A program made the translations under genes and the position numbers. A DNA stretch of 63,305 nt, counting the filler, from Platydemus manokwari (Eukaryota), in the NCBI GenBank assembly GCA_037951405.1. It is 5 parts of 5 records of this genome, joined end to end, with 100 filler letters (N's around TTAATTAATTAA, not from the genome) between each part and the next. Parts side by side here need not be neighbours in the genome. Positions count along the whole stretch, not along the records: positions 48,048 to 63,305 come from JBBMOY011313649.1; 4 more parts are not named here. The stretch is one strand, 5' to 3'. Positions 48,048-63,305 of the stretch are shown one piece after another. The notes below the pieces were generated by a model, which was not told where the DNA came from, did not search any database, and saw only the letters and a program-made list of their open reading frames with translations. The stretch's first letter is position 1. Each line of letters opens with the position of its first letter.

Positions 48048-49837
48048 TAAAATCACAAACGAATTATATCTAAGCATATTCTCGACGGTTTATAGAGCAC
48101 CACTCAATCTTGAGAAAAATATTTCAAAAATTATAACGAAAAGATTTATTGATTATAAAGATTTCTTGAATTATTATAACTGTAACCCAACTTTTAAGTG
48201 TACAAAACTATCAAAAAATCGATTCATTTATTTTTCGTTATTAATAAATATTTTATTTACCACATGTGCTCTATTTTTTAATTGGTGTAGTCCCTGTGTA
48301 AATCATTATTTTCATAGAGATAAAATCATCATAATCATCATCATTCATCATCTGTTTGAAAACAGTATGCCATGCATCATATATACAGAGACTGACAGGA
48401 ACAATAAGTAAACTTGTAAGACCATGGATGAGTCAGATGTAAAATAAAAACCTACATTAAATCCATTATCTACCCCGTTCTGCGCAAGGGCATATAAGAT
48501 GTCAGTTGGTTAAGGTTAACTTCTAACTTGATGGATGAAAAGAAATCATCAGATCAATAAATGTCGTAGATAGAGAAGACCAACATAAAAAATTTAACAT
48601 TAAGTTATTTTAAATTGTATATATTTATGCCTAATTAAGATTAACAATAAAAGCTCTCTGGAAAATTTTTTAAATTTATTTTAAAAATGTTTGATTTGTT
48701 TCTATTGATAAATAAGTTTCGAAAATCGCATAAATGAATTTTTCCATTGAATCTTCAATTTTAAATGAAGTAGTTATAAATACAAATTTATAAATATAAA
48801 TAAAATAATACAATATATAAAATATTATCAAAGATATACTCATAAACACAAATTTAAAATAATTGTAATAATAGAACACAAAAGTAAAACCTACCAAACA
48901 TTCAATAAAAGTAATTTGTTAAAAATTATCATTAAATTTGTTTTGGGATTGGAAATGATTTTGTTCTGCTGACTTTTGTGTTTGGAGATTGAACTGGAGA
49001 TTGATGGATTGGCGATATTTTTAAAAAAAATTGATTTGTGAATTTAAATCGGGAATAAATTATTTGGAATGCTATTTGATGGTGATGGATTTCACAAATG
49101 CTTTTTCACGTGTTGTTCATTAGAAATCTATCGCTATGATGACGAATAATCACAAAACCAATTGATAAACCAACAGGACATTCAAGAAAGAATAATTATG
49201 AGAGGCCGGTTGGGATAATTTGTGAAATGAATCTTGATATCAAAATAAGTAATGATTTAAAATATTAATAGCGAATATTAATAGATGATGATTCAGAAAA
49301 TAACGAAAAGATAAATCAAAATTCTTGATTCTCTTATCAAAAATTAATTTTCGGTAATTTCAACTAGTCTCGAAATATGATTTTTAAGCAGATTAAATGC
49401 AGAATTTTCTTGTCGTTTTTGACTATTATTGATTAGAATAGTTATTTCTTTTAATTTTCAAAAAAATAACGTCGAAGGCCATTGTAACCTAAATCTAGAA
49501 AACTTGGCATTAGTCTTGATCTATATCAGGCCTATAGCGCCTAATTGAGAAAGTTGATTTAAGGAAAGATAACGGCTTTATAAATTGATAACTTGGTTAA
49601 AAATGAGAAAAATCTTTTCCTGGTGGTTTTCAAGATTAAAAATGAGATTTCATGAATGAGTAGTAAAATTTAAAACAAATAGATTTATTAGAAACATTAA
49701 ATAAGGAATAAAAACACTTATTATGTAATTCTTATCAATTTTTATATCTGTCTATTGACAAACAAAGGTCAAGTGCTCTACGATTTCATCTATAATTTAC
49801 CAAACATGACAATAACATCATAATAATTAGAACTCTG

Positions 49838-49847
49838 ATGTCCACAA
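49838..49847 (+). CDS. PDX1: PDX1 exon 1 (micro-exon ATG TCC ACA A)
   Basis: ATG followed by GTAATC donor, CTAAT branch-like motif and TTTAG acceptor at 49887 (40-nt intron); phase joins in frame with exon 2. Confidence 0.7.
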
Positions 49848-52800
49848 GTAATCTGCTAATTTTTCATTATCGTTTAGATTTGTTTAGATTTAGCTCAATT
49901 CGGAACGTTCACTGTCAAGTCTGGCTTGGCACAGATGGCCAAAGGTGGATTGATTATGGATGTAGTTAATCCCGAACAAGCCCGTATAGCTGAAGAAGCA
50001 GGAGTATGATTTAATTTTTAAATTGATAAGAATACGTTCAACGGTATGAACAAATTGTAGATTATATTGCTGCGTGATTACTTTAAAATTATAACATTGC
50101 GAAAGCTTTATAATCGTGGTTGAATTATTAAAAATACTGTCTAATAAAACGGCCATCTATTCAAATATCTGTAACAGCGTATGTTGACACACATTATACA
50201 ATAACTTTAGCAACCATTAAAATGGTATAAAGTTATTTGATTATATTATTAACTCATTGATTGATTTCGTAAATTATATGAAGTAAATTTCCAAACATTC
50301 AATTCGACTAAATAGTTTTTACTTAAAGAAATTTTTAAGACAACTTATTTTAAATAAAACTGAATTTAATCAAATTTTTGATTTTAAAATTATTTATCGT
50401 GTCATAATTTTTAAAACAAACATCTAAATTAAGATTTTAAAAAATAAATTTTGGAAAATAAAATAAAATCAAGAATAAATTAAAGTTTAAAAAATATTAG
50501 ATAAATTTATGATTACATTAAATCCATTAACATTATAATTTTATTTCAGTAAATAAAGGAGCTTATAACAGGTGTAATGGAAGATTGTTGTTTCCGTTGA
50601 AAAAGATTGGATAAAACATGACATCAAATTAATATTTTAATTAATTATATTTTTGGAATAATTATGATGTTATCGCATGATTTAGTATTTCATAAGCAGA
50701 GTGCATTTATCAAAAAGGTCTCTTGTGTTTGTTATAAACGTGGAAATAATGCGAAATATATATTTTAATGTAAAGATTGTTATTATTATTACTATTATTA
50801 TTGTTATTCCTTTTATTATTGTCATTATTATTGTTATTTAGATTACTATTTCATGTATGTTGATATTAACAATATCCACACCTTTAAAAGTGGTATATAT
50901 TTAACATTCCATTATATTTTACAACAAATCAAAGACTTTCATAGAAATCTTTAAATGTGAATAAAGATCAGTCTCAATTTGAGATAAACTAATTCAGGCA
51001 TGTGCTGTGATGGCTCTTGAAAGAGTCCCAGCAGATATTCGCAAATTTGGAGGAGTTGCCCGGATGACAGATCCGCAAATAATCAAAGATATTATGAATG
51101 CAGTCACAATACCTGTCATGGCAAAAGTTAGAATTGGACATTTTGCAGAGGCACAAATCTTACAGGCCATTGGCGTTGATATGATTGACGAGTCAGAAGG
51201 TTGTTTAAATATTTACTGTTCTAGATATTGATATTTTGATATTTTTCAAATTGTTTTCAAGCATTTTTTGAAGTATTGCGAATGAAAATCTAAATCGAAT
51301 TTATATTTGAAATAATTATGAAGAAATTCACTCATTTTTCTGACATTTTATTACTTCATGAGTAAGTAAAATTTATGATTGTCTTTTAGAGTAATTTTTA
51401 CCGCACAATTTCCGTAGGTTTAGATATATTTTTATATCAATATTTTTAAATAGCTCAAGCTTTATTTGCGATTTGGCAAAGCCTTGGTACTCGAATAAAA
51501 TGCATCATATACATTATCCATAATCTCTTTAAATTTAAATTTGTAGATTTATTGTCAGTGATCTCTAACATTATATATATATATATATATATATATTCAT
51601 ACTTTTTAATTCTCTTTAAATTTTCACCAATTTTTTCATAATTTAAACAATATTTCCTTTCTGGTCATTTTATTTTAAAAGTTATCCTATGATCTTAAAA
51701 TTTTTTCTGATGATCTGCTCTGATCAGTAAAGGTCTAAGTATTCAAAAATTTAAGAAGGTATTCTTCTTTAGTTCTTAGTCCAGCAGACCCTTCGGATCA
51801 CGTCGATAAGACCAAGTTCACTATACCGTTTGTTTGTGGAGCTCGCGATCTCGGTGAAGCATTAAGAAGAATTAACGAAGGTGCAGCAATGATTCGAACC
51901 AAGGGAGAAGCTGGGACCGGAGATGTAATCGAAGCAGTCAGGCATGCTAAATCAATTAAACATAGCATTGAGGCTTTGCAAAACATGAATGAGAAAGAGT
52001 AAAAATTTATATTCCATTATAATAATGATTATATCTACATATTAGATAACATTAATTGATAATTGATACTACGTACATTAATTGATTATAAAACTTCGAA
52101 TTACTGATTCAAATCCACACATTGATTTTCTTAAGATTTTCCTATTTTGATTTTTCTAAAAGCTGAAGAACTTAACCAGAAATATTATACAATAAGAATC
52201 AATCCGAAACGAATAACAAATATTAAGTTATATAATCGATCTATGACGATAGGGAAAATGATCGGATTAATTCAAGGTGTCAGATTAATTTCTAAAACTG
52301 GCAGAGATATTAGAAAAAACAAATTAAATAATATTTATACTTTCGTCTTAATGATTAAATAATAATGGAATTTAATGAAAATCTGTGAAATATATTCTGT
52401 TTTTAAACTTCGTTCCAGAAATGAATTGTCATTTTTTCAAGATTAAATTTTAATAGTTATATCCCAGATAAATGATAAACGTAAGTAGAAAATATTTAAT
52501 AAACTTTATTATAATTTCGGTTCTAAATTTTTAGTTTTATATATTTTGGAATGATCTAAATGTTTCGAACTATTTCTAATATGATCTTTTAAATTAAAAC
52601 AAAAGTTTAATGATATAAAATGACCAACAAATTGACTTTTTTCTTAGACTGGAAGGTTATGCATCAATAATAAGAGTGCCGGTAGACTTAGTAAAAATGA
52701 CCAGAGATTTGCGAAAGCTCCCGGTCGTAAATTTTGCTGCTGGTGGATTAGGTAAGATGAAACAATTTTTATGCGATACATTTCTAATGATTCTGTTTAT

Positions 52801-54168
52801 TGATCAAAGCTGAACAAAACCAATATTTAATACTAGATAATTATTTAACCTGTTATTTAGCAACGCCAGCTGACGTGGCTCTTCTGATGCAACTTGGTGT
52901 GGAGGGAGTTTTTGTCGGTTCGGGAATATTCAAGTCAGATAATCCTAAAAAGAGAGCCGAAGCTATGGTTAAAGCAGTGACACATTTTAATGATGCTAAG
53001 ATCTTAGCAGAGATAAGTGAAAATCTGGGTGAAGCCATGGTAAGATTAAAAATAAATGATCACAGTTTATAAAGACGTAAAATGTATGTTGGTGATATTG
53101 GATGTTAGTTAAGAGGTCGTGATTTTCAAACCATCCCATGGGTGAACGATTGATTTAAAGTAATATCTAATACTAGTGAGTAGAAAGGATTATAAAACTA
53201 CTACATCGATGAACTACATGTTAGAGTTATCAATGGTTCAATTAGGAAACCCGCAAAACTGTACCGCATTAAAAATTTATTTGCTTATTTAAGAATGCTT
53301 GTCTTTCCACAAGAGTTCAAACCTTTCCTCCTTTCGTTAATTAAATTTTATATATTTAAAGTTATTATTTCTGTACAGGCCATGTCTTGCTACATAAAAA
53401 ACAATTAAATACATTCATGATAATTTAAAGTCTGAATGTTGCTATTCTTACCATAATGGACCAATCGCACCAGTATATAGTTATATATACATTACTATCA
53501 AAATGTTTTGAAATTCAATTGAAAAAAAATTAGAATGATAGTTCATCTATTTTAACAACTACATTTTCTTCATTGATAACTGAAGTGTGTAAAAATAATT
53601 CTCATTGTATAAATTTGAAAAGAAATTTATTTATCAATAAAGGCAACCTTATTTGACGGTTTTTATAATCAAATAATGTTCTGTTCAACTCTGATTATGG
53701 TTTTTGTACTATGTAGATAAAATCTTTAGGTTTATTTAATTCATAAAACAATCATGTCGTCATTTATACACTGCCTTTACTGTGATTGAGGAATCGATAA
53801 GTAAATTATTTGACACTGACTCTTGAACAAATCATTCGCAATCAGTGTCGATAATATTTGATGAAAATCTGATTCATTTCCAACTCCTTTAACATAAAAT
53901 AGTCCTCAGTACAATTTTTTGTGGCTGTACTGTAAATACTAAATACTTTCAGTTTATTTTTAACATGAAAGTTTTTGTTTGTAAATCTTATGTTTGTTTG
54001 ACTCTTTACCAAAACAACCTCAATGTTTATTTTTATTTTTCGTTCATTGATAGTATAAATAAATATTTATAATTAATTGAAGCTTTTAATGAATTTTTTA
54101 AAAATCAGGTTGGCATATCATGTGACAGTGTTGTTCAAAAGTGGAGTCTGAGAGAAGGCAAAGAATAA
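49838..54168 (+). CDS. PDX1: Pyridoxal 5'-phosphate synthase subunit PDX1/SNZ (PdxS), complete 7-exon gene, 298 aa: join(49838..49847,49888..50003,50998..51199,51773..51998,52648..52751,52861..53039,54109..54168)
   Basis: Hand-spliced exons total 897 nt with consistent phases and GT-AG ends: [68 protein letters not shown]...[34 protein letters not shown]...[40 protein letters not shown].../...[40 protein letters not shown]...[24 protein letters not shown]. All hallmark SNZ motifs are present. Confidence 0.96.
49888..50003 (+). CDS. PDX1: PDX1 exon 2
   Basis: Encodes [34 protein letters not shown]; ends at GTATGA donor. Not in the ORF track. Confidence 0.93.
50998..51199 (+). CDS. PDX1: PDX1 exon 3
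   Basis: TTCAG acceptor; [15 protein letters not shown]...MAKVRIGH...IDESE; overlaps ORF 51007..51231. Confidence 0.95.
51773..51998 (+). CDS. PDX1: PDX1 exon 4
   Basis: TTTAG acceptor; VLSPAD...[33 protein letters not shown]...; GTAAAA donor. Confidence 0.95.
52648..52751 (+). CDS. PDX1: PDX1 exon 5
   Basis: CTTAG acceptor; [34 protein letters not shown]; GTAAGA donor. Confidence 0.93.
52861..53039 (+). CDS. PDX1: PDX1 exon 6
   Basis: TTTAG acceptor; [26 protein letters not shown]...LGEAM; GTAAGA donor. Confidence 0.95.
54109..54168 (+). CDS. PDX1: PDX1 terminal exon 7
   Basis: ATCAG acceptor; [19 protein letters not shown] completes the conserved GEAMVGI motif; AATAAA about 40 nt downstream. 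Confidence 0.85.
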   Translation, partial: VGISCDSVVQKWSLREGKE

Positions 54169-54375
54169 GCATAACTCATATTATCAATTATTGAAAATGA
54201 TTTTATAAAATAAATAATTTTTTGTTGAAAAAAATATAATTTTCTCGATTGAGTTTTGATGAAAATGAGAAATTTTTGAATATACTGAAAATAATATTTT
54301 TATTGCAAATTGTAATGTAGGGAAAGAATTGCAAGCTATATTTATTACACAGTGTATTTATTTTTACTCTTCAGA

Positions 54376-55350
54376 CAAGGTGACTCACAACGGACCCCTC
54401 AAAACTTCCATTTTAAAAATTTTTCAATTTCAAATTTATTTTCAAAATGTCCGTCATTTTTATTCATGCGACGACGAATTCGCTTCCCAATAATTTTAAA
54501 ATAACAATTCCCCTACACATCTTGTCATCAATGTCATGGAATTCTTCACAGATTATCTTATCAAGTACAACTGTGATTTGAGGATGATTCTGAGACACCA
54601 CTTTCTAAAAATGATCCAAAAGAAAGATATCACATAACAATAAATTTGGTAATCTCTAGGAAAAATGCCAAATTTTCCCGATTACCTGGTGATCAATTCA
54701 ACAATTTGTAAATTATGATTCAAATATTCTATGGCTGATCAGTAGAAATATCTTTGTTTGCTCATCCCCCATAAGCACATTTTAGCATTATAGGGCTTAT
54801 AAAAACACATTTCTGACCATGGAAAGATAATTTTTACTGGTGACAATTGTCTTGATGAAACAAAATACAGTAATTTCTTGTACTGATATACCCAATCAAA
54901 AAATGACACCGAGTTGATTCATGTATTTTGCCTGAAAACAATTTTGGCTTTCATCAGATCAATGATCACGGTTATGATGATTAATTGATCCATTAAGATA
55001 GAGTACGACTTCATCGGTGAAAATTACTTTTTGAATATGTAGAGAATCTTGTTGTAGTAAAGAAACGAAATCTTTGCAGATAAACAGTCTTCGATCAGTG
55101 TTATCCTCGTTAAACCCCTGAAGCTAATAAAGTTATAGCTGTAGAGACACAAATTCATTTTATTAAAATTTTGAAATTCTAAGATTCTTAGATGAATTAG
55201 AAAGTATCACTCATTTCATTCATACCATTTATAGCTGAGCCATAATGGTTGACTTAATTATCATCACGATGTTTGTCGAGTGCTTTTTAGTGGGCATTTC
55301 CAGTTAATTCAGATCTCTCATTTAATATTGAATTTTATAAAAAAATTAAA
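54376..55350 (-). mobile_element. Decayed mariner-like (DD37D/DD41D-type) transposase, related to 15722..16402 (ends approximate)
   Basis: FTDEVVLYLNGSINHHN (first catalytic D); RLPNLLLCDIFLLDHF*KVVSQNHPQ...CEEFHDIDDKMCR; KRIRRRMNKNDGHFE. Confidence 0.8.
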
Positions 55351-57829
55351 ATACAATCTCCCCCTTTGGCATCTTGATATTGTTGAAATTGAAAAGACGC
55401 ACACAAATATAATAATCAATAATAAAATGAATTTGAATTTTAAAATTAGTAGAATTTATTTCGATACAACCAGTTTAAAATAGCTTATAAATTCTTACAG
55501 ATTCTAACAGGTAAAATTTCCAGTGGAACAGCTAGTATATAAATAACTTATTACAAAAAAACATAATTTGGCCATGAAGTTCACTTAATATAAACATTAA
55601 ACAGCACCATTAAAAATTATGATTCTCACGGTCAACTCTAAATGTCCAGTAAATGATAAGTCATTATTTTAAATGATATCAGTCAACGTGATTGAATACA
55701 GATCAACTTTGCTCATATGACCTTATATTTCGAATACATTATCATTAAAACGAAAGGCTCGATAATTGTATCAATCATTGAATGTTTTGATCCAATGATT
55801 GATACATGAATTACATAAACTTCTATCTAAAATTGCGTCTATTAAAACAGATTCACATGAGGTCTGTTTTGAAATGTCATATATTTAATGTAGAAAATAC
55901 GCATCTATCAAATTCAATGTGAAGCCCACCAAATTGTTAGTAATGAGGTTCAATATTTAAGAATAATTGACTTTGGTGGGTGATTTCAATAAAATTCGTG
56001 TAAAAAAAAGTCAAAAGAAATTTAAAAGTAAATTCGTCATCATAATTGATAATAAAATACTGAATATATTTCAACCTTTAATATTAATGTTGTTAGTAGA
56101 TGAGAATTGTTTTAGTTAATAAAAATAGATAAATGAACAACCGATATTAAGCTCAAAATATTTGGTTAGTAATTCTTAGAGTGATATACTTAATATTGGT
56201 CGAGTTGAATAAAATAAAATAGAAATAAACCTATGATGTTTTTGTCATCAGAGATCTTCATAACTTAACAAAATGCTGAAAAAATGTTGACTATTTTTAT
56301 GAGTGTGTCATATTGTAGACGTATCTACTATAAGAAAAAAATAACATCGTTAGCCGACATAGTTTCAACTCAAAATGTAACATTTGATAAGAATGTTCTG
56401 CAATCTTGAGTAAAAAATTTGTAGTCAATTCTTTGATATACGAGCGAACTAAGTTAATTTAAATACTTGATTAATTTCAAATTGCTTGAAAATTCTTTCG
56501 GCGTTTTATATAGTTAACGGATAATTTGTTTCGTTTAATATCAATAAAAATTTGTGTTTGACATTTTTAAATATTACTGTCAAATGTATTCATATTGAAA
56601 TGACCAATGCGATAGTTAAAAGATAATATGTAATTTAAAAAAGACTGCTGATAATCTACAAAATCACAGCTGAAGATACATTAACAATTCTAGTTTATCT
56701 TGAAATAAGTCAATTCAATATCACAATATTCAAGGGCCTTAATGATATTATGAGAATATTATTACTCTATATTAAAGTCCGATAATTCATCTATATTTAA
56801 GAAATATTGTTTAATACGCATCCCAATCAAAATTGCATTGTATTTGTGATTTACTTCAGTTTATTATGTGTTTCACAGTGTGAATCTACATCTTGACAAT
56901 GGCTGAATTACAGCATATATTCCACAGTTGTAATCTATGATTTACCTCTGTAAATCTATGAGTAGAATTCATCATAATTATATATATTCATTCATGTATT
57001 TTAAAACTCGTAACATATAAGCCTGGAAAACATTTAACAATTTGACTAATTCGTAAGGTCAGTCAGCTAATAAATTATTTTGGTTATTGAGATAAAAACA
57101 TAATTGCATAAAGTTGTGTAATAGTTAATATCAAAATTAAATATTAAAAACATTCTTTAAATATTTAGAAAATAAAGGAAAATATTTTCACGATTTCCAT
57201 GGGATAGATGACTGGAAAATATTATCTAAATACAGTAATCATTCTCAAGAACGACAATAACTGCTATCGAAATGTGTCAAATGCGAAATTGTTAATGCTT
57301 TAATTTTTAACGACATAGTGGTCAAAATTGTTGATTCAATAATAATACGAGTTAAGTTTACATGATTATTAAAATAAAATTTCTACCAAATCCATAGTTC
57401 ATATGTTGGAACTGTTGGTAATGAAGTCGTTCTCAAATTTCAAATTTTTGAATAACGACATTCAATTTGGTTTCTTTGTTAATTTGAGAGTCATTTTCAA
57501 ATTGGAAAAATTAATTTTGGTATCTTTAAATAAATTATTTCAGTATTAAATACAAATGAAGAAATGAATTTAACACTTAGTTTAAATCACTGAAGATCGA
57601 CAAATTGATTTTCGTTAAGATTATTTAATCTGAAAAGGAACCAAACAAATTCCAATATTAATAATGATTACGAAAAGACTAATTATTTTCATAAAGGATA
57701 GTCATTTCCAAAAACGTACTACTAGTATTCGTAATAAATTAATTTGATTAAATTAATAAAAGAGTCATTCAAGATAATTTTAATCTAATGATTTCTCGTG
57801 TATTATTTAATCTCAAAATTTATTTATAT

Positions 57830-58335
57830 TGTTGTATAGATCCCAAATTAACCAAAAGGGTCATAGGAACCAAGCAAATAATCGTAAAAAGAGTTGACAT
57901 ACACAGGTTCAATACGCACATGTGCCGTCAACCAAACAGATTTGTTTCAATATTAATCCATATTTAAAAGCTAAGAATAGACAAGCACATACCTAAAAAT
58001 GACAGCAAACACAAATATTCGCCAATAACATAAGATGTGTGAGGAAAATTTCAAGCAGACCTATCTACGAACAGATTCAGAAAATGGAAAAAAAAGACCC
58101 GTGACATCAAGCAGATACACCAATAGGTCTATAAAAAAGGTTGAGTTCCGTGAGTAACTGTCCGTCTTTGTGGTTCCTAAGTTGAGTTCTTAAATTCGTG
58201 TAATTTTCAGTAACCAGTCTGTTTGGTTACTTAAATTCTGTCTTTGACTTTTAGGTGCTAATCCCATTTTATGTGATAAACTGTCGTTGATTATAAAGAG
58301 GCTTAATTATAGTTGTTGTGATTAAGATTGTAACA
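57830..58335 (+). mobile_element. Possible solo LTR
   Basis: TGTT...AACA ends, internal CTATAAAAAAGG TATA box, locally higher GC; no target-site duplication seen. Confidence 0.4.
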
Positions 58336-60701
58336 TTTTGGGTAATATAATTTTCAGTATGATTGTTGATTAATACTCAACAATATTTTGACTTAAAATT
58401 CCATTATAGATGAAAAAGAGTAAAAACAGTTAAATTCTTTTAGAAACAACAACAATCACAATATTAAAGTCAAAGCAATAATTTGAGCATAAATGTCTTG
58501 AATATTCGGATTCACAAAACATGTAGAATGACCCACAATTATATCATAAGTTTGGAAGGCATTTATAACACCTCAAATAAAATCTCAAAGCAACTGATCA
58601 GGCTTCATCCATCATCAAATAAATATAAAGTATTTCATTATTAATTTTTATATTTATCTTGCAATTTTTTTCTTGGATTGTCCTATTTTGAATTCTAACT
58701 AGAAATCAGAAGAAATCAAGAATCAATTTTTTATCACAATAAAGTATTTTAAATATTTAGTTTTATTTTTGAGGATTTTTATCAATTACTGAAAGTTGAT
58801 TTATCTACATGGTTCAGTTAACATTTTATGATGTCGAACCGGACCTAAATAGAATTGCTAAACAAAGTTCCTGTTTTAATCATAAAACTTCTTTATACCT
58901 TTTGATTTTTTTTAATTTAATTTTGTTATTATAAATCGACTTAGCAAACTCCTGACATGTTTAATAATCTAATATTTTTTTTAACAAGATTTAGAGTATC
59001 AATCTCATATCTGAAATTTTCATTAGAAAATTTATAATGAAGTTCCATTTTAGCAGACTTTTTTGAAAATTTTGAAAACAAGTAATCTTTAAAATTGACG
59101 TTATGCGATTCTCAAAATTTCTCTAGCATTCACAAATAAATAACAACTCAGCGAATTTAATCAGTAATTATTTATTTGGCTCATTTTGAGATTTATTTTC
59201 TTTTTTCTAGTTTAGTGACAAATCTAAAATTAGATCAGTGTGATACTATTAGTATTAGCATTTGTATAAAAGCTTAATTATTTTGTAGTCGCAAATAATT
59301 TTATGAACTGCTGAATGTGTATTAATTGTAAATATTCAAAGAAAATACATTTATTAAAATAAATGTTAAAAAGGTATAGGTAGAAAAAATTTAATCAATT
59401 TCCAACATGCCATAAGAGCAGGAGTAATATACGCACAAATTAAAATGATTCTTATTTGTGCGTATATTTTTAAATTTAAGATCACCAAATGATTTCAAGA
59501 AAACGATATGATGTAGTATTAATTTTAATGATAGTGATTCATCTTATACAATTGACAACAGAGATGTTTTGTAAAAACTTGATTAGTCAAAGCTGGAGTC
59601 GAGGCCAATTTACAAAATACATGAAATGTGGACGAGTACTGTAACTATTAAATCTGGCTTCACCATCTCTAACATCATGTTCCTGAGTTTCATCTTAGCG
59701 TTACCAATTGTTTTACCTAGTTTCGTTCATGTTTTGTTAACGTTAAATCACTGAAAATCGTTCATTTTAATAAAAGATGCACTATTACTATTAATAGAAA
59801 TTATATCTAAAGTTATTTTAGTCTACATCTTTGGAAATCATTAATTTTTTTAGTGAAATAAACTTGTATGAAATATAAAAATTATGCATTATTAAAATCC
59901 CTAAATTTTTAATATCTTTGTAAACTGATGTACAATAAATGTTTTACAAAAAGATAGTCAACAATTTCCGTAATTCCAAGAATCCATGATACGTAGTGTT
60001 AGATTAAATAAAATTTTGATAAAATATCATGCAGACATTCAATTATAATTTAAATATCTTTTAAATTTGTCAAGGCATTAAATTTAGAGAAAACCCATAG
60101 CATGACTACGTAAATACATTCAGTAAAAATACAACAACAAATGTTACTTAAATGGTATCTATTTCAAATCAAATGTCAAATAATATAATAATCATTAATA
60201 ATTCATCTACATTCAAGAAAGTGTATTTAATATATTAGTCATGAGATCTAACTATCCATGAAAAATAACAGTACAAATTGAATATAAGGTTAAACATATG
60301 ATAGTAATCAAAAATAAAATTTCAAATGTCAATTAATCCCCTTAATATTAGATCATATAAAATTAAAAATAGCTATTAATTAAATATCAAGAATTCAAAT
60401 TTGAGAAGAATAAGGAAAAATAACTATTCAAATATTATTTTTATCAAATATTGTTTATATAAATCAATATCTATAATCACCATGTAATCTGATGACTAAT
60501 TCTCATTACTTTTAATTTTTTTTAATTAAACAACTGTGATTTTAACATTTATTTTTCTTGATTTTATTTTATGATAAATAATTATTTTAAATTTATAGAG
60601 TTCTCATGTAAATTTTAGATTTAGAAAAATTTCCAAAAAGTAATAAATAATTCATTAAAATATTTATTTATCAAATTCAAATAATCATTTTTATATTTAC
60701 T

Positions 60702-61583
60702 TTATGCTGCAATAATCATACGTATTTTTTCAATACCCATTGAAGCGACATTCCAATGTTCTTCAGCTGTAATGTTTTCAGCATAAAGTTCCTTCATTTG
60801 CTTAATAAGTGCTCCTTTTGGCACATAATAAACAATATTTGTTACATCCGGTCTGAGTACTGTAGCAGCTGCTTTTCTCAGACAATCTGATGTCAATTCA
60901 TCGGTATCACCGAGGAAATCAGAAAACAAAATCGACATACCATGCCAAGAATTATAACAAATCTGTACGACAAATGTGCAGTAAATACCAGTTTCTTCAT
61001 TTGAAATGGATATTAGTCAGCTGATTCCCTTTGAGCGTTTTTTCACATAGAAATGGAATTTATTTTTGCTCTCAATTTCTTCACTATTTTTACACAGCAT
61101 TTTTCTAACTGCATCTTTACCAAAAACTTCATACATCTCCACACCGGAAGAAGGTGCAGAAATGTTTTCAAATCCAAAACTCGCATACATTTTCTCCAAT
61201 CCGAAAATAGATCTTTGAAAAACCAATTTCAAAAATTTGACATTGTTCTCATCTGCAATTCTAAATAAATGATGCATCAATCTTTTGCCCAAACCTTTGC
61301 CACGAAGATCGGGTGATACAAAAAAGTCATCAATATAGTAACCGTAACCGTGCAGAATGGAGTATTCTTCTATATACAAAATGTAACCACATGCTTTTCG
61401 AACATTTTCATTTTCTTCAAATAAAATTAGACATTCGAAGTCATTATTTTTAAATGATTGTAACATAGTTGGTTCGTCCATTAAAAAATATTCCGTCATT
61501 AATCCATGGTATTGGACCAAATTATTGGTGAACCTAAATACCGTGGATATATCATCGATACTCGCTTTGCAAATCGTGTACAT
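60702..61583 (-). CDS. GNAT acetyltransferase, spermidine/spermine (diamine) N-acetyltransferase-like; 188 aa to an in-frame TGA (61017..61019), 293 aa if read through
   Basis: Acetyl-CoA motif A IDDFFVSPDLRGKGLGKRLM, SSAT-like YSILHGYGYYIDDF, and MYASFGF. ORF 60702..60938 is in the same frame and the 26 codons between are stop-free. Confidence 0.8.
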
Positions 61584-63076
61584 ACAACTTGAAAATTATG
61601 ATTTGTAACTTATTAAAACAATGTTAAATATTGATAATTAAAAAATTAATGAATTATTTTAATATATAGTTTTAGTTTGTGTATGTCATAATCATCATTT
61701 CCTTGTAAAAAATTTATCGGCAGATAATAAATAGCCAGTTGATTTCAAGAAAGTGGATTTAATTTTAAAATTTTTCTTAGAACAACTTAGAAAGGTAACT
61801 CTGTAATTGTTCGTGTGTTTAATTTACTTTCCGATTTAATGTTTATTAAAAAACATAACATTTTTATTTTAAGGTAAGTATCATAATGAAATAGATTATT
61901 ATAAATAATTACATAAAATTTAATTTTACGTAACATCTTCAAGATTAAATAGGTTCTCCTCAAACAAAAACATTTATATTTTCCTTAATTTTTGATAGCG
62001 GGTCAGTTAATGAATGAATGAAAATATTTATTTTTTTAGTTGACATTGAACAAATTGTTTTATTTTTGCTAGTTACATCATGCAATAGAAATTTTGTTAT
62101 TGATTAGCGAACAAGGTGTAATAAATTTGTATTTTGTATTCAAACTATTGAATAAAGGAGAAAAATGCTTGGTTCATTTGAAATATGCGAACTTTTTTAA
62201 GATCAACTGTTATGAATATTTAAAAAGTAGTTTTTCTAAGAATCTATATTTTAAATCTAATATAGATTTATGAGTGAAAATGAAATTTATTATAGTTCGT
62301 TAGGGAACTTTAAGGATCCTGTAGTTTCTTCTAATATAAATGTTGAGACTAATCTCATACAAAAATGCTTACCAAATATAAAACCTATTTATATTCAAAT
62401 AATGTGTTCAATAATTAAAAATCACAGTATATAAATATTTACATAATCAAAAATCGAAATCTGTGCTATTTCCCATCGATTCAATCACTATATATTCAAA
62501 CTATCAATCTTCGATAATGATTTAGAAAAAAATCATTCAAAAATCAATCGTTTATTAACTAATTAACTGATTTTTATTACACTGGTTTGATGTTTATTAT
62601 TATGATTGAATATAATAGAATCGAGTAAAAAATTTGTAATTAATTATAAACATAAACAAATAAAGAAAATTAATGTATTAATGGCTTTAAGAGAATTTCA
62701 ATGGTAAGCGTATTTAAATACCCGTGACTATATGGACTATTAACTATGGACTAGTAACATAAAAAATAGAATGGAATTTATTATAAATCTAGTTTTCAGA
62801 CAATTCTAATAAAAAGAGGAAGTCTGCAAGACAACAGGCTAACACAAATGACACGTTTATTAAATAAGTTGATTCTCGGTCATTTCATATGACGCTTCTA
62901 ACCCAAGCCCACCCCAAATTCTCGGTTCACTCGAATTTGTTGTGAACTTGAGTTAGAAGGGTCATATTACCACCACTCTATGGATAAGAAAATTGGTTGA
63001 TGGTAAAATGTAGAATTAAAAATAATAAAAAAAATAAAATAAAAAGCAATTTCTAATTAAAAAATATTCATTATAA

Positions 63077-63305
63077 ATGAACGAACCAAATTTGGAATTT
63101 CACTGTGAAGTATGTAATAAATATTTTGTAAATAAAACAGGATTAATATCTCATGAAAAATCTAACAAACATAAAGCATTATATAATGCATCTATTAATA
63201 ACAATGAAATAACTTTACATGATAATACATGTGATATTATTAAATTTGTTAAATTCATTAAACATTCTCCAGAAAATAAAAATATAATTTCATATATTTC
63301 AGAAT
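63077..63305 (+). CDS. C2H2 (JAZ/U1-like spacing) zinc-finger ORF, 3'-truncated by window end
   Basis: MNEPNLEFHCEVCNKYFVNKTGLISHEKSNKHKALY...; C-x2-C-x12-H-x5-H; frame open for 76 codons to the window end. Confidence 0.7.
   Translation, partial: MNEPNLEFHCEVCNKYFVNKTGLISHEKSNKHKALYNASINNNEITLHDNTCDIIKFVKFIKHSPENKNIISYISE

Follow-up and report, generated by a model that had tools for sequence, protein, structure and literature searches.

Conserved chromosomal readthrough of stop codons is well established in insects and in a few genes of vertebrates, worms and yeast. The UGA-CUAG context characterizes a group of vertebrate readthrough genes (OPRL1, OPRK1, MAPK10, AQP4, MDH1 and LDHB), and the shorter UGA-CUA occurs in alphaviruses and giant viruses as well; UGA-CUA alone gives 1.5% readthrough, and the sequence that flanks it in OPRL1 can raise this to as much as about 31% (PMC4132726). 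Such genes are abundant in Drosophila and Anopheles (Jungreis et al.) and include an N-acetyltransferase, CG1969/AGAP010769, and the extension of CG1969 is reported to add a peroxisomal targeting signal (PMC5100048).

The gene described here, which consists of an upstream reading frame (ORF1) and an extension in the same frame beyond a TGA, shares the stop codon and its 3' trinucleotide with the vertebrate UGA-CUAG genes and the alphaviral UGA-CUA sites, and likewise has a conserved context and coding constraint past the stop. It differs from the vertebrate motif at the +7 base, which is G there and A in eight of nine sequences here, and from the vertebrate genes in its long extension (104 aa), which is predicted to be folded and is conserved like the main ORF, as well as in gene family and lineage. 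Compared with the Drosophila and Anopheles genes, it has the same comparative signature (conserved stop, downstream coding and UGA-C bias), and one of those genes, CG1969, likewise encodes an N-acetyltransferase. Unlike CG1969, the relatives of the present gene have differing C-termini, none of which is PTS1-like, and the extension is predicted to be a GNAT-like domain. A peroxisomal or other C-terminal signal in the extension was considered and rejected, because the C-termini are not conserved among the relatives.

On the enzyme side, ORF1 aligns with SSAT1 and SSAT2 (PDB 2b3u, 2bei) over the whole enzyme of about 170 aa and has the R-x-x-G-x-G motif, but SSAT1 and SSAT2 are single-domain proteins without a known recoded stop or a fused second domain, unlike the present gene. 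Tandem GNATs with one degenerate domain are represented by mycothiol synthase MshD and N-myristoyltransferase. By analogy, the putative long product would be of this type, in which a catalytic GNAT is joined to a second GNAT fold without the CoA motif as an intramolecular pseudo-dimer; however, MshD and N-myristoyltransferase are encoded by uninterrupted ORFs and both of their domains are full length, whereas the second domain here is predicted to be without b1-a1-a2 and lies beyond a stop.

The window, meaning the whole stretch of 63,305 nucleotides that was analysed, was joined from parts of the Platydemus manokwari assembly GCA_037951405.1, and the gene lies in the part that comes from JBBMOY011313649.1 (positions 48,048 to 63,305). 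This piece is about 25% GC and holds few ORFs, the sole other recognisable gene being PdxS/SNZ. The features, in window coordinates and with the evidence for each in brackets, are as follows.

61089..61583, minus strand: putative SSAT-like GNAT acetyltransferase domain, complete, ORF1 residues 1-165 (Pfam, SSAT2 profile match, pN far below pS)
61020..61088, minus strand: ORF1 residues 166-188, a variable linker and then the conserved block F-x-F-x-[VI]-K-x-x-x-K-G-I-S (alignments)
61017..61019, minus strand: in-frame TGA, the proposed readthrough (recoded) stop (homologous codon in 9/9 distinct family sequences and in both haplotypes of DNA run X1)
61014..61016, minus strand: CTA (Leu) directly 3' of the stop, forming the UGA-CUA leaky context (CTA in 8/9 sequences, CTG in 1/9)
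60705..61016, minus strand: proposed readthrough extension of 104 codons, a predicted truncated GNAT-fold domain, b2 to b7 (conservation, pN versus pS, AF2 model)
60702..60704, minus strand: terminal TAA of the proposed long isoform (aligned with TAA, TGA or TAG of the relatives)
50995..53051, plus strand: PdxS/SNZ (pyridoxal-5'-phosphate synthase), with exons at about 50995-51198, 51769-51990, 52650-52750 and 52860-53050 (Pfam SOR_SNZ)

Translation of the window gave an ORF1 of 188 codons on the minus strand, running from the ATG at 61583 to the AGC at 61020 and ending in AAG GGA ATC AGC TGA, with the in-frame TGA at 61019..61017. Past the TGA, the same frame begins with CTA ATA TCC (CTA at 61016..61014) and stays open for 104 codons up to the TAA at 60704..60702, so that reading the UGA would give 293 decoded positions. 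The ORF at 60702..60938 on the same strand is merely the ATG-started tail of this open frame. The original prediction had placed one acetyltransferase across the two ORFs, and its coordinates, frame and stop context are right: there are 293 positions with a single in-frame TGA and no other stop before the TAA. It had also judged so long an open frame past a stop to be improbable by chance, and the computed chance of 104 open codons agrees with this (2.8e-4 with the base composition of the extension itself, 4e-5 with that of the flanks).

For ORF1, Pfam gave Acetyltransf_1 at 49.6 bits, above the curated cutoff of 20.7 (E = 5.7e-13). Human SSAT2 (2bei_A) was matched by a profile built from ORF1 and three of its relatives, with residues 4-160 aligned against 6-165 (E = 5.1e-08), and the SSAT1 chains were matched by the ORF1 profile at 7-9e-08. 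The acetyl-CoA pyrophosphate-binding motif, sought as Q/R-x-x-G-x-G/A after strand b4, is present as R-G-K-G-L-G at ORF1 residues 94-99 and is invariant in the four aligned members. Because the Pfam GNAT match, the SSAT1 and SSAT2 profile matches and the invariant CoA motif all point the same way, residues 1 to about 165 of ORF1 are, judged by sequence, a complete SSAT-like GNAT enzyme, putative as to substrate. The label "SSAT-like", which had been given before any database search, holds with Acetyltransf_1 at 5.7e-13 and the SSAT1 and SSAT2 profile matches at 5e-8 to 9e-8.

The neighbouring PdxS gene is split by introns. Two of its exons, which are contiguous in the profile, matched SOR_SNZ at 2e-35 and 3e-36, and its introns, of about 110 to 650 nt, are of the GT-AG type. 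This shows a eukaryotic genome with standard splicing, in which a spliceosomal intron is a real alternative at the TGA. Just upstream of the PdxS exons, at 50769-50860 (+), there is a simple trinucleotide repeat that reads as poly-Tyr, poly-Leu or poly-Ile according to frame.

Relatives of the gene were obtained from word-based searches and one exhaustive profile search, and they are solely unnamed ORF fragments that lie on short metagenome or Logan contigs. Eight of these contigs are distinct (L001, L002, L003, L004, L006, L007, L008, which has the same sequence as L009, and L010), and the window supplies a ninth sequence. The contigs are about 0.6-1.7 kb in length and come from soil-type metagenomes, and their extensions are 45-78% identical to that of the window. 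A gene caller of prokaryotic style had cut the gene into two same-frame ORFs in every one of these contigs, because each contains one in-frame TGA at the homologous codon. When 1.84 billion representative proteins were searched with a profile of the extension (HMMER), one further post-stop fragment of the family (P0004) was found; P0005, from the same search, was rejected as a chance match in a repeat protein. Among the JGI metagenome contigs, the extension profile picked out L002 alone, and neither the 1.84 billion representatives nor the JGI contigs yielded a relative of the extension outside this small family. Neither this profile search of 1.84 billion proteins nor the word search turned up a family member with a sense codon at the position of the TGA.

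All nine sequences (the window and the eight contigs) contain a single in-frame TGA, always at the codon that follows K-G-I-[S/T], and the local alignment around the stop reads K-G-I-[S/T]-TGA-L-[I/V]. The codons of K-G-I-S vary synonymously (AAG/AAA, GGA/GGG/GGT, ATC/ATT and AGC/AGT), and L004 has Thr ACC at the last of them. The stop and the C-U on its 3' side are invariant, the following codon being CTA in eight sequences and CTG in one, and TTA or TTG never follows the TGA, though TTR accounts for 47% of the Leu codons in these genes. The +7 base is A in 8/9 sequences and G in L004 only. The leaky UGA-CUA context, which the original prediction had recognised in the window, is thus borne out in the family (UGA-CUA in 8/9, UGA-CUG in 1/9).

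Sequencing runs were searched for the locus, which gave two contig runs of DNA type and no RNA run. DNA run X1 carries two haplotypes, or two very close genomes, that are about 5% apart across the gene (window 60990-61630). Over 60990-61146, the variant X1 contig shows eight differences, of which 7/8 are at third codon positions and none is in the TGA. Genomic reads mapped to the locus, a check that had been proposed together with the prediction, thus show the TGA kept in both X1 haplotypes. A sequencing error or a private nonsense allele, which had been named as an alternative, is excluded, since the TGA is found in nine sequences and in the second haplotype, and is therefore shared by eight relatives.

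Several further observations concern the sources and ends of these sequences. Run X2, which has a different organism label, contains an identical piece of 231 nt (61242-61472) at low depth. Compared with L008, a T-run of L010 (L010:480-495) contains one extra nucleotide, about 100 nt upstream of the conserved TGA; this insertion puts ORF1 out of frame with the extension in that contig and may be an assembly error or the sign of a decaying copy. The contig ends L006:1-110 and L007:1-45 are unrelated to the family, the former being GC-rich and the latter adapter-like (it translates as ...LSLHDALPI...), and they look like assembly chimeras outside the gene. L001, L004 and L006 share one ENA sample, and L002 and L009 share one JGI sample. 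Three subtypes of the family occur together in single metagenomes, with the pre-stop tails FHFYVKKRSKGIS, FFFIIKRQEKGIS and a more divergent ...IKIEKGIT. The co-occurring subtypes could be paralogues in one genome or could represent several co-occurring species, and if they are paralogues, the UGA would be older than the duplication.

Among the four full-length members, pS was 0.44-0.94, with synonymous sites near or beyond saturation in most comparisons, and was 0.49-0.82 in the extension. The values of pN were 0.11-0.29 for ORF1, 0.06-0.24 for the 28 codons of the candidate intron discussed below and 0.12-0.30 for the extension (over the three regions, a range of 0.06-0.31 is also given). 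Variable columns are dominated by third positions, with counts by codon position of 85/58/163 in ORF1 and 52/32/86 in the extension, and mean column identity is 78% in the extension versus 79% in ORF1. No indels or additional stops were found in the extension in any of the nine sequences. From these substitution patterns, the downstream frame is judged to be under the same purifying selection as ORF1. The comparison of orthologs that the original prediction had suggested, namely whether TGA-CTA is kept and downstream dN/dS is below 1, revealed an invariant stop and a downstream pN far below pS.

Conservation extends from the first post-stop codon onwards. A conserved independent start is lacking, since L002, L004 and L007 do not have the ATG at 60938 and none of the other ATGs in the extension is conserved. 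The block F-x-F-x-[VI]-K-x-x-x-K-G-I-S continues across the stop into L-I, and indels among the relatives are confined to the linker just upstream of this block. Because the conserved block spans the stop and the variable linker lies upstream of it, the stop is located inside a conserved coding block, 13-15 codons into the second domain.

Several other explanations of the in-frame UGA have to be weighed. Several protist lineages reassign UGA, and UGA could accordingly be a sense or ambiguous codon in this lineage through context-dependent reassignment, without any gene-specific recoding signal. However, L002, L003 and L006 have TGA as their terminal stop, aligned with the TAA/TAG of the others and followed by T or A, and the conserved Trp codons are all TGG despite a GC content of 25-34%; these genomes thus use UGA as a normal stop. 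There is also one TGA per about 293 codons, at a constant site, and the PdxS exons need no in-frame TGA, and we regard reassignment as very unlikely. If the UGA encoded selenocysteine, the 293-aa protein would be a selenoprotein made with high efficiency, and this explanation draws on the strict conservation of the UGA, which never has a sense codon in its place, and on an extension conserved like ORF1, as is expected if nearly all of the product is full length. Against it, Rfam scans gave no SECIS match at E<=10 in window 59500-61700 (1.2 kb downstream) or in L001-L004, L006-L008 and L010, whose 3' flanks (up to 530 nt, in L008) are unalignable between relatives. Selection on the 3' CUA/CUG is not known as a feature of selenocysteine sites, neither the word search nor the profile search of the 1.84 billion representatives gave a Cys homologue, and the UGA site is outside any predicted catalytic or redox position. 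Selenocysteine had been put forward in the original prediction as an alternative; given the lack of a SECIS match in the scanned part of the window and in the relatives' contigs, we hold it to be extremely improbable.

The same holds for a short intron that takes out the stop, either the 84-nt GT..AG candidate at 61046..60963 that had been pointed out before or another one. The genome does have short GT-AG introns, such as that of about 110 nt in the neighbouring PdxS gene, and both the window and L001 have a GT at offset -27 and an AG ending at +56, at a length that is a multiple of 3. Yet among the nine sequences, the donor GT is present in 4/9 (it belongs to a Val codon, which is Ile in five relatives) and the acceptor AG in 3/9, and in the 75 nt that precede the stop not one GT is common to even 6/9. 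The 28 candidate codons evolve as coding sequence (pN 0.06-0.24 versus pS 0.44-0.93, variable columns 10/6/23), the K-G-I-S and L-I that flank the stop are kept through synonymous changes, and the length is constant. With splice sites in a minority of the sequences and a region that evolves as coding, we give the intron as little credence as selenocysteine. Translation might also end at the UGA and the 104 codons be made separately, by reinitiation, from a non-AUG start or from a transcript of their own, as a polypeptide that binds the enzyme. A two-chain complex model, described below, scored well and speaks for such an arrangement, but a conserved ATG is absent from the extension, constraint starts at the first post-stop codon, the conserved block crosses the stop in one frame and the frame is kept in 9/9 sequences; moreover, reinitiation after an ORF of 188 codons is not known as a normal eukaryotic mechanism. 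A separate polypeptide is, in our estimation, no more probable than the intron. As intron, selenocysteine, UGA reassignment and separate translation are all unsupported, gene-specific redefinition of the UGA remains.

RNA structure near the stop was analysed as well. RNAalifold, with four and with nine sequences, found no conserved RNA structure 3' of the stop (consensus -4.6 kcal/mol, covariation about 0). There is a potential long-range pairing of 8 bp on the minus strand between 61030..61023 (AGGGAAUC, just 5' of the stop) and 60920..60913 (GAUUUCCU, about 100 nt downstream), and it persists in nine sequences with some changes from G-C to G-U or A-U. Because both pairing arms encode invariant peptides (KGI and SDF), this pairing is no evidence of an RNA signal, and it may be coincidental.

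For the protein analyses, ORF1 and the extension were searched and modelled as separate pieces, and X was used for the stop in one local script only. The extension matched no Pfam family and, by sequence, no solved structure. The AlphaFold2 model of the extension from nine sequences had a pLDDT of 78.8 and a pTM of 0.70, with the topology b-b-b-a-b-a-b-b-a; a model from four sequences (pLDDT 47.7) was discarded. Nearly all of the top 50 Foldseek matches of the model are GNATs (E 0.012-0.1), among which SSAT1 and SSAT2 have the highest identity (16-19%). VIA-align gave Z values up to 8.7 (rmsd 3.2 A over 98 residues), which is in the "middling" range of this tool, and most of its rows aligned the model with GNAT chains from about residue 40-70 to their C-terminal end. 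The extension is accordingly predicted to correspond to b2-b7, the core of a GNAT fold, with b1-a1-a2 missing. The R/Q-x-x-G-x-G/A loop for CoA is absent from it, and for this reason the extension is probably catalytically dead. The model also matches a C-terminal fragment of antizyme (4zgy_B, Z 7.0) and the N-terminal domains of NUDT6 and NUDT7, which we take to be GNAT-like folds without acetyltransferase activity. An internal duplication is not significant by sequence, either with hhalign of the extension against ORF1 (probability 0.3) or with Smith-Waterman alignment and shuffles (z <= 1.7). The extension may plausibly have arisen from an SSAT-like duplicate.

A model of ORF1 and the extension as two separate chains had an ipSAE of 0.68, versus 0.00 for the best control. 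This mark of 0.68 was reached by 51/78 solved complexes and by 2/108 mismatched pairs. The runs of the complex model share at least 79% of their contacts, and the partner pLDDT is at least 76. In the contacts of highest confidence, extension residues 88-92 (H-W-N-V-A) are placed between ORF1 residues 117-122 and 138-141, which we assign to b5 and b6, and extension residues 62-64 are paired with ORF1 residues 150-151, which we assign to b7. According to the crystal-structure literature on SSAT, SSAT-type GNATs dimerise by reciprocal strand insertion, and the predicted packing of the extension on b5/b6 and b7 of ORF1 resembles this strand-exchanged homodimer. The model, which like the other structural claims comes from shallow-alignment predictions, supports the view that ORF1 and the extension belong together. 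If it is right, the two domains of the long isoform would form a pseudo-dimer within one molecule, and the short isoform would have to pair with another copy of itself.

Taken as a whole, the comparison makes programmed UGA-CUA readthrough in an SSAT-like gene, with a short and a long protein, the probable explanation. This was the core of the original prediction, and it is now favoured by the invariant stop and C-U, the downstream constraint and the lack of a conserved ATG. The stop has been kept and not swapped for one of the sense codons that a single step would reach, so termination must matter too; retention of a stop over its replacement by a sense codon is the classical argument for two isoforms. 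The gene would thus be a single-exon gene of an AT-rich eukaryote, with a conserved leaky UGA-CUA stop 13-15 codons into its second domain. Most ribosomes would terminate at the UGA and yield an enzyme of 188 aa, made up of the complete GNAT domain and a short tail. A fraction of the ribosomes would decode the UGA by a near-cognate tRNA, which in UGA readthrough is one for Trp, Cys or Arg, and would add the 104 codons to give the 293-aa protein. The added truncated GNAT-like domain would then pack on the catalytic domain by reciprocal strand insertion, in the manner of the second subunit of an SSAT homodimer. That readthrough takes place, how efficient it is, the pseudo-dimer architecture and any form of regulation are what we infer here.

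In readthrough genes the added tail is typically less conserved, and it is unusual for it to be constrained to the same degree as the main ORF; constraint at the level of ORF1 would fit efficient recoding, selenocysteine included, equally well. To our knowledge, it is uncommon to find a stop within a folded domain together with an extension that equals the main ORF in constraint. The comparative signature is unusually clean at saturated synonymous divergence, and a context of about 20 nt makes the locus a compact test system. Readthrough at this gene would carry the UGA-CUA rule beyond vertebrates and alphaviruses, and it raises the question of whether a dead GNAT domain in cis replaces homodimerisation of the SSAT type.

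The original prediction had raised a possible response to polyamines, which is conjecture. A form of it that we consider quite unlikely is that the UGA acts as a metabolite-sensing switch. The polyamine level would tune UGA-CUA readthrough and thereby shift the enzyme between a short homodimerising form with shared active sites and a long form that carries a dead GNAT-like domain in cis at the dimer interface, with a change in activity, specificity or stability. If this were true, a polyamine-catabolic enzyme would contain an autoregulatory recoding circuit with a logic like that of antizyme frameshifting, and readthrough that responds to polyamines would, next to antizyme, be a second polyamine feedback that works by recoding.
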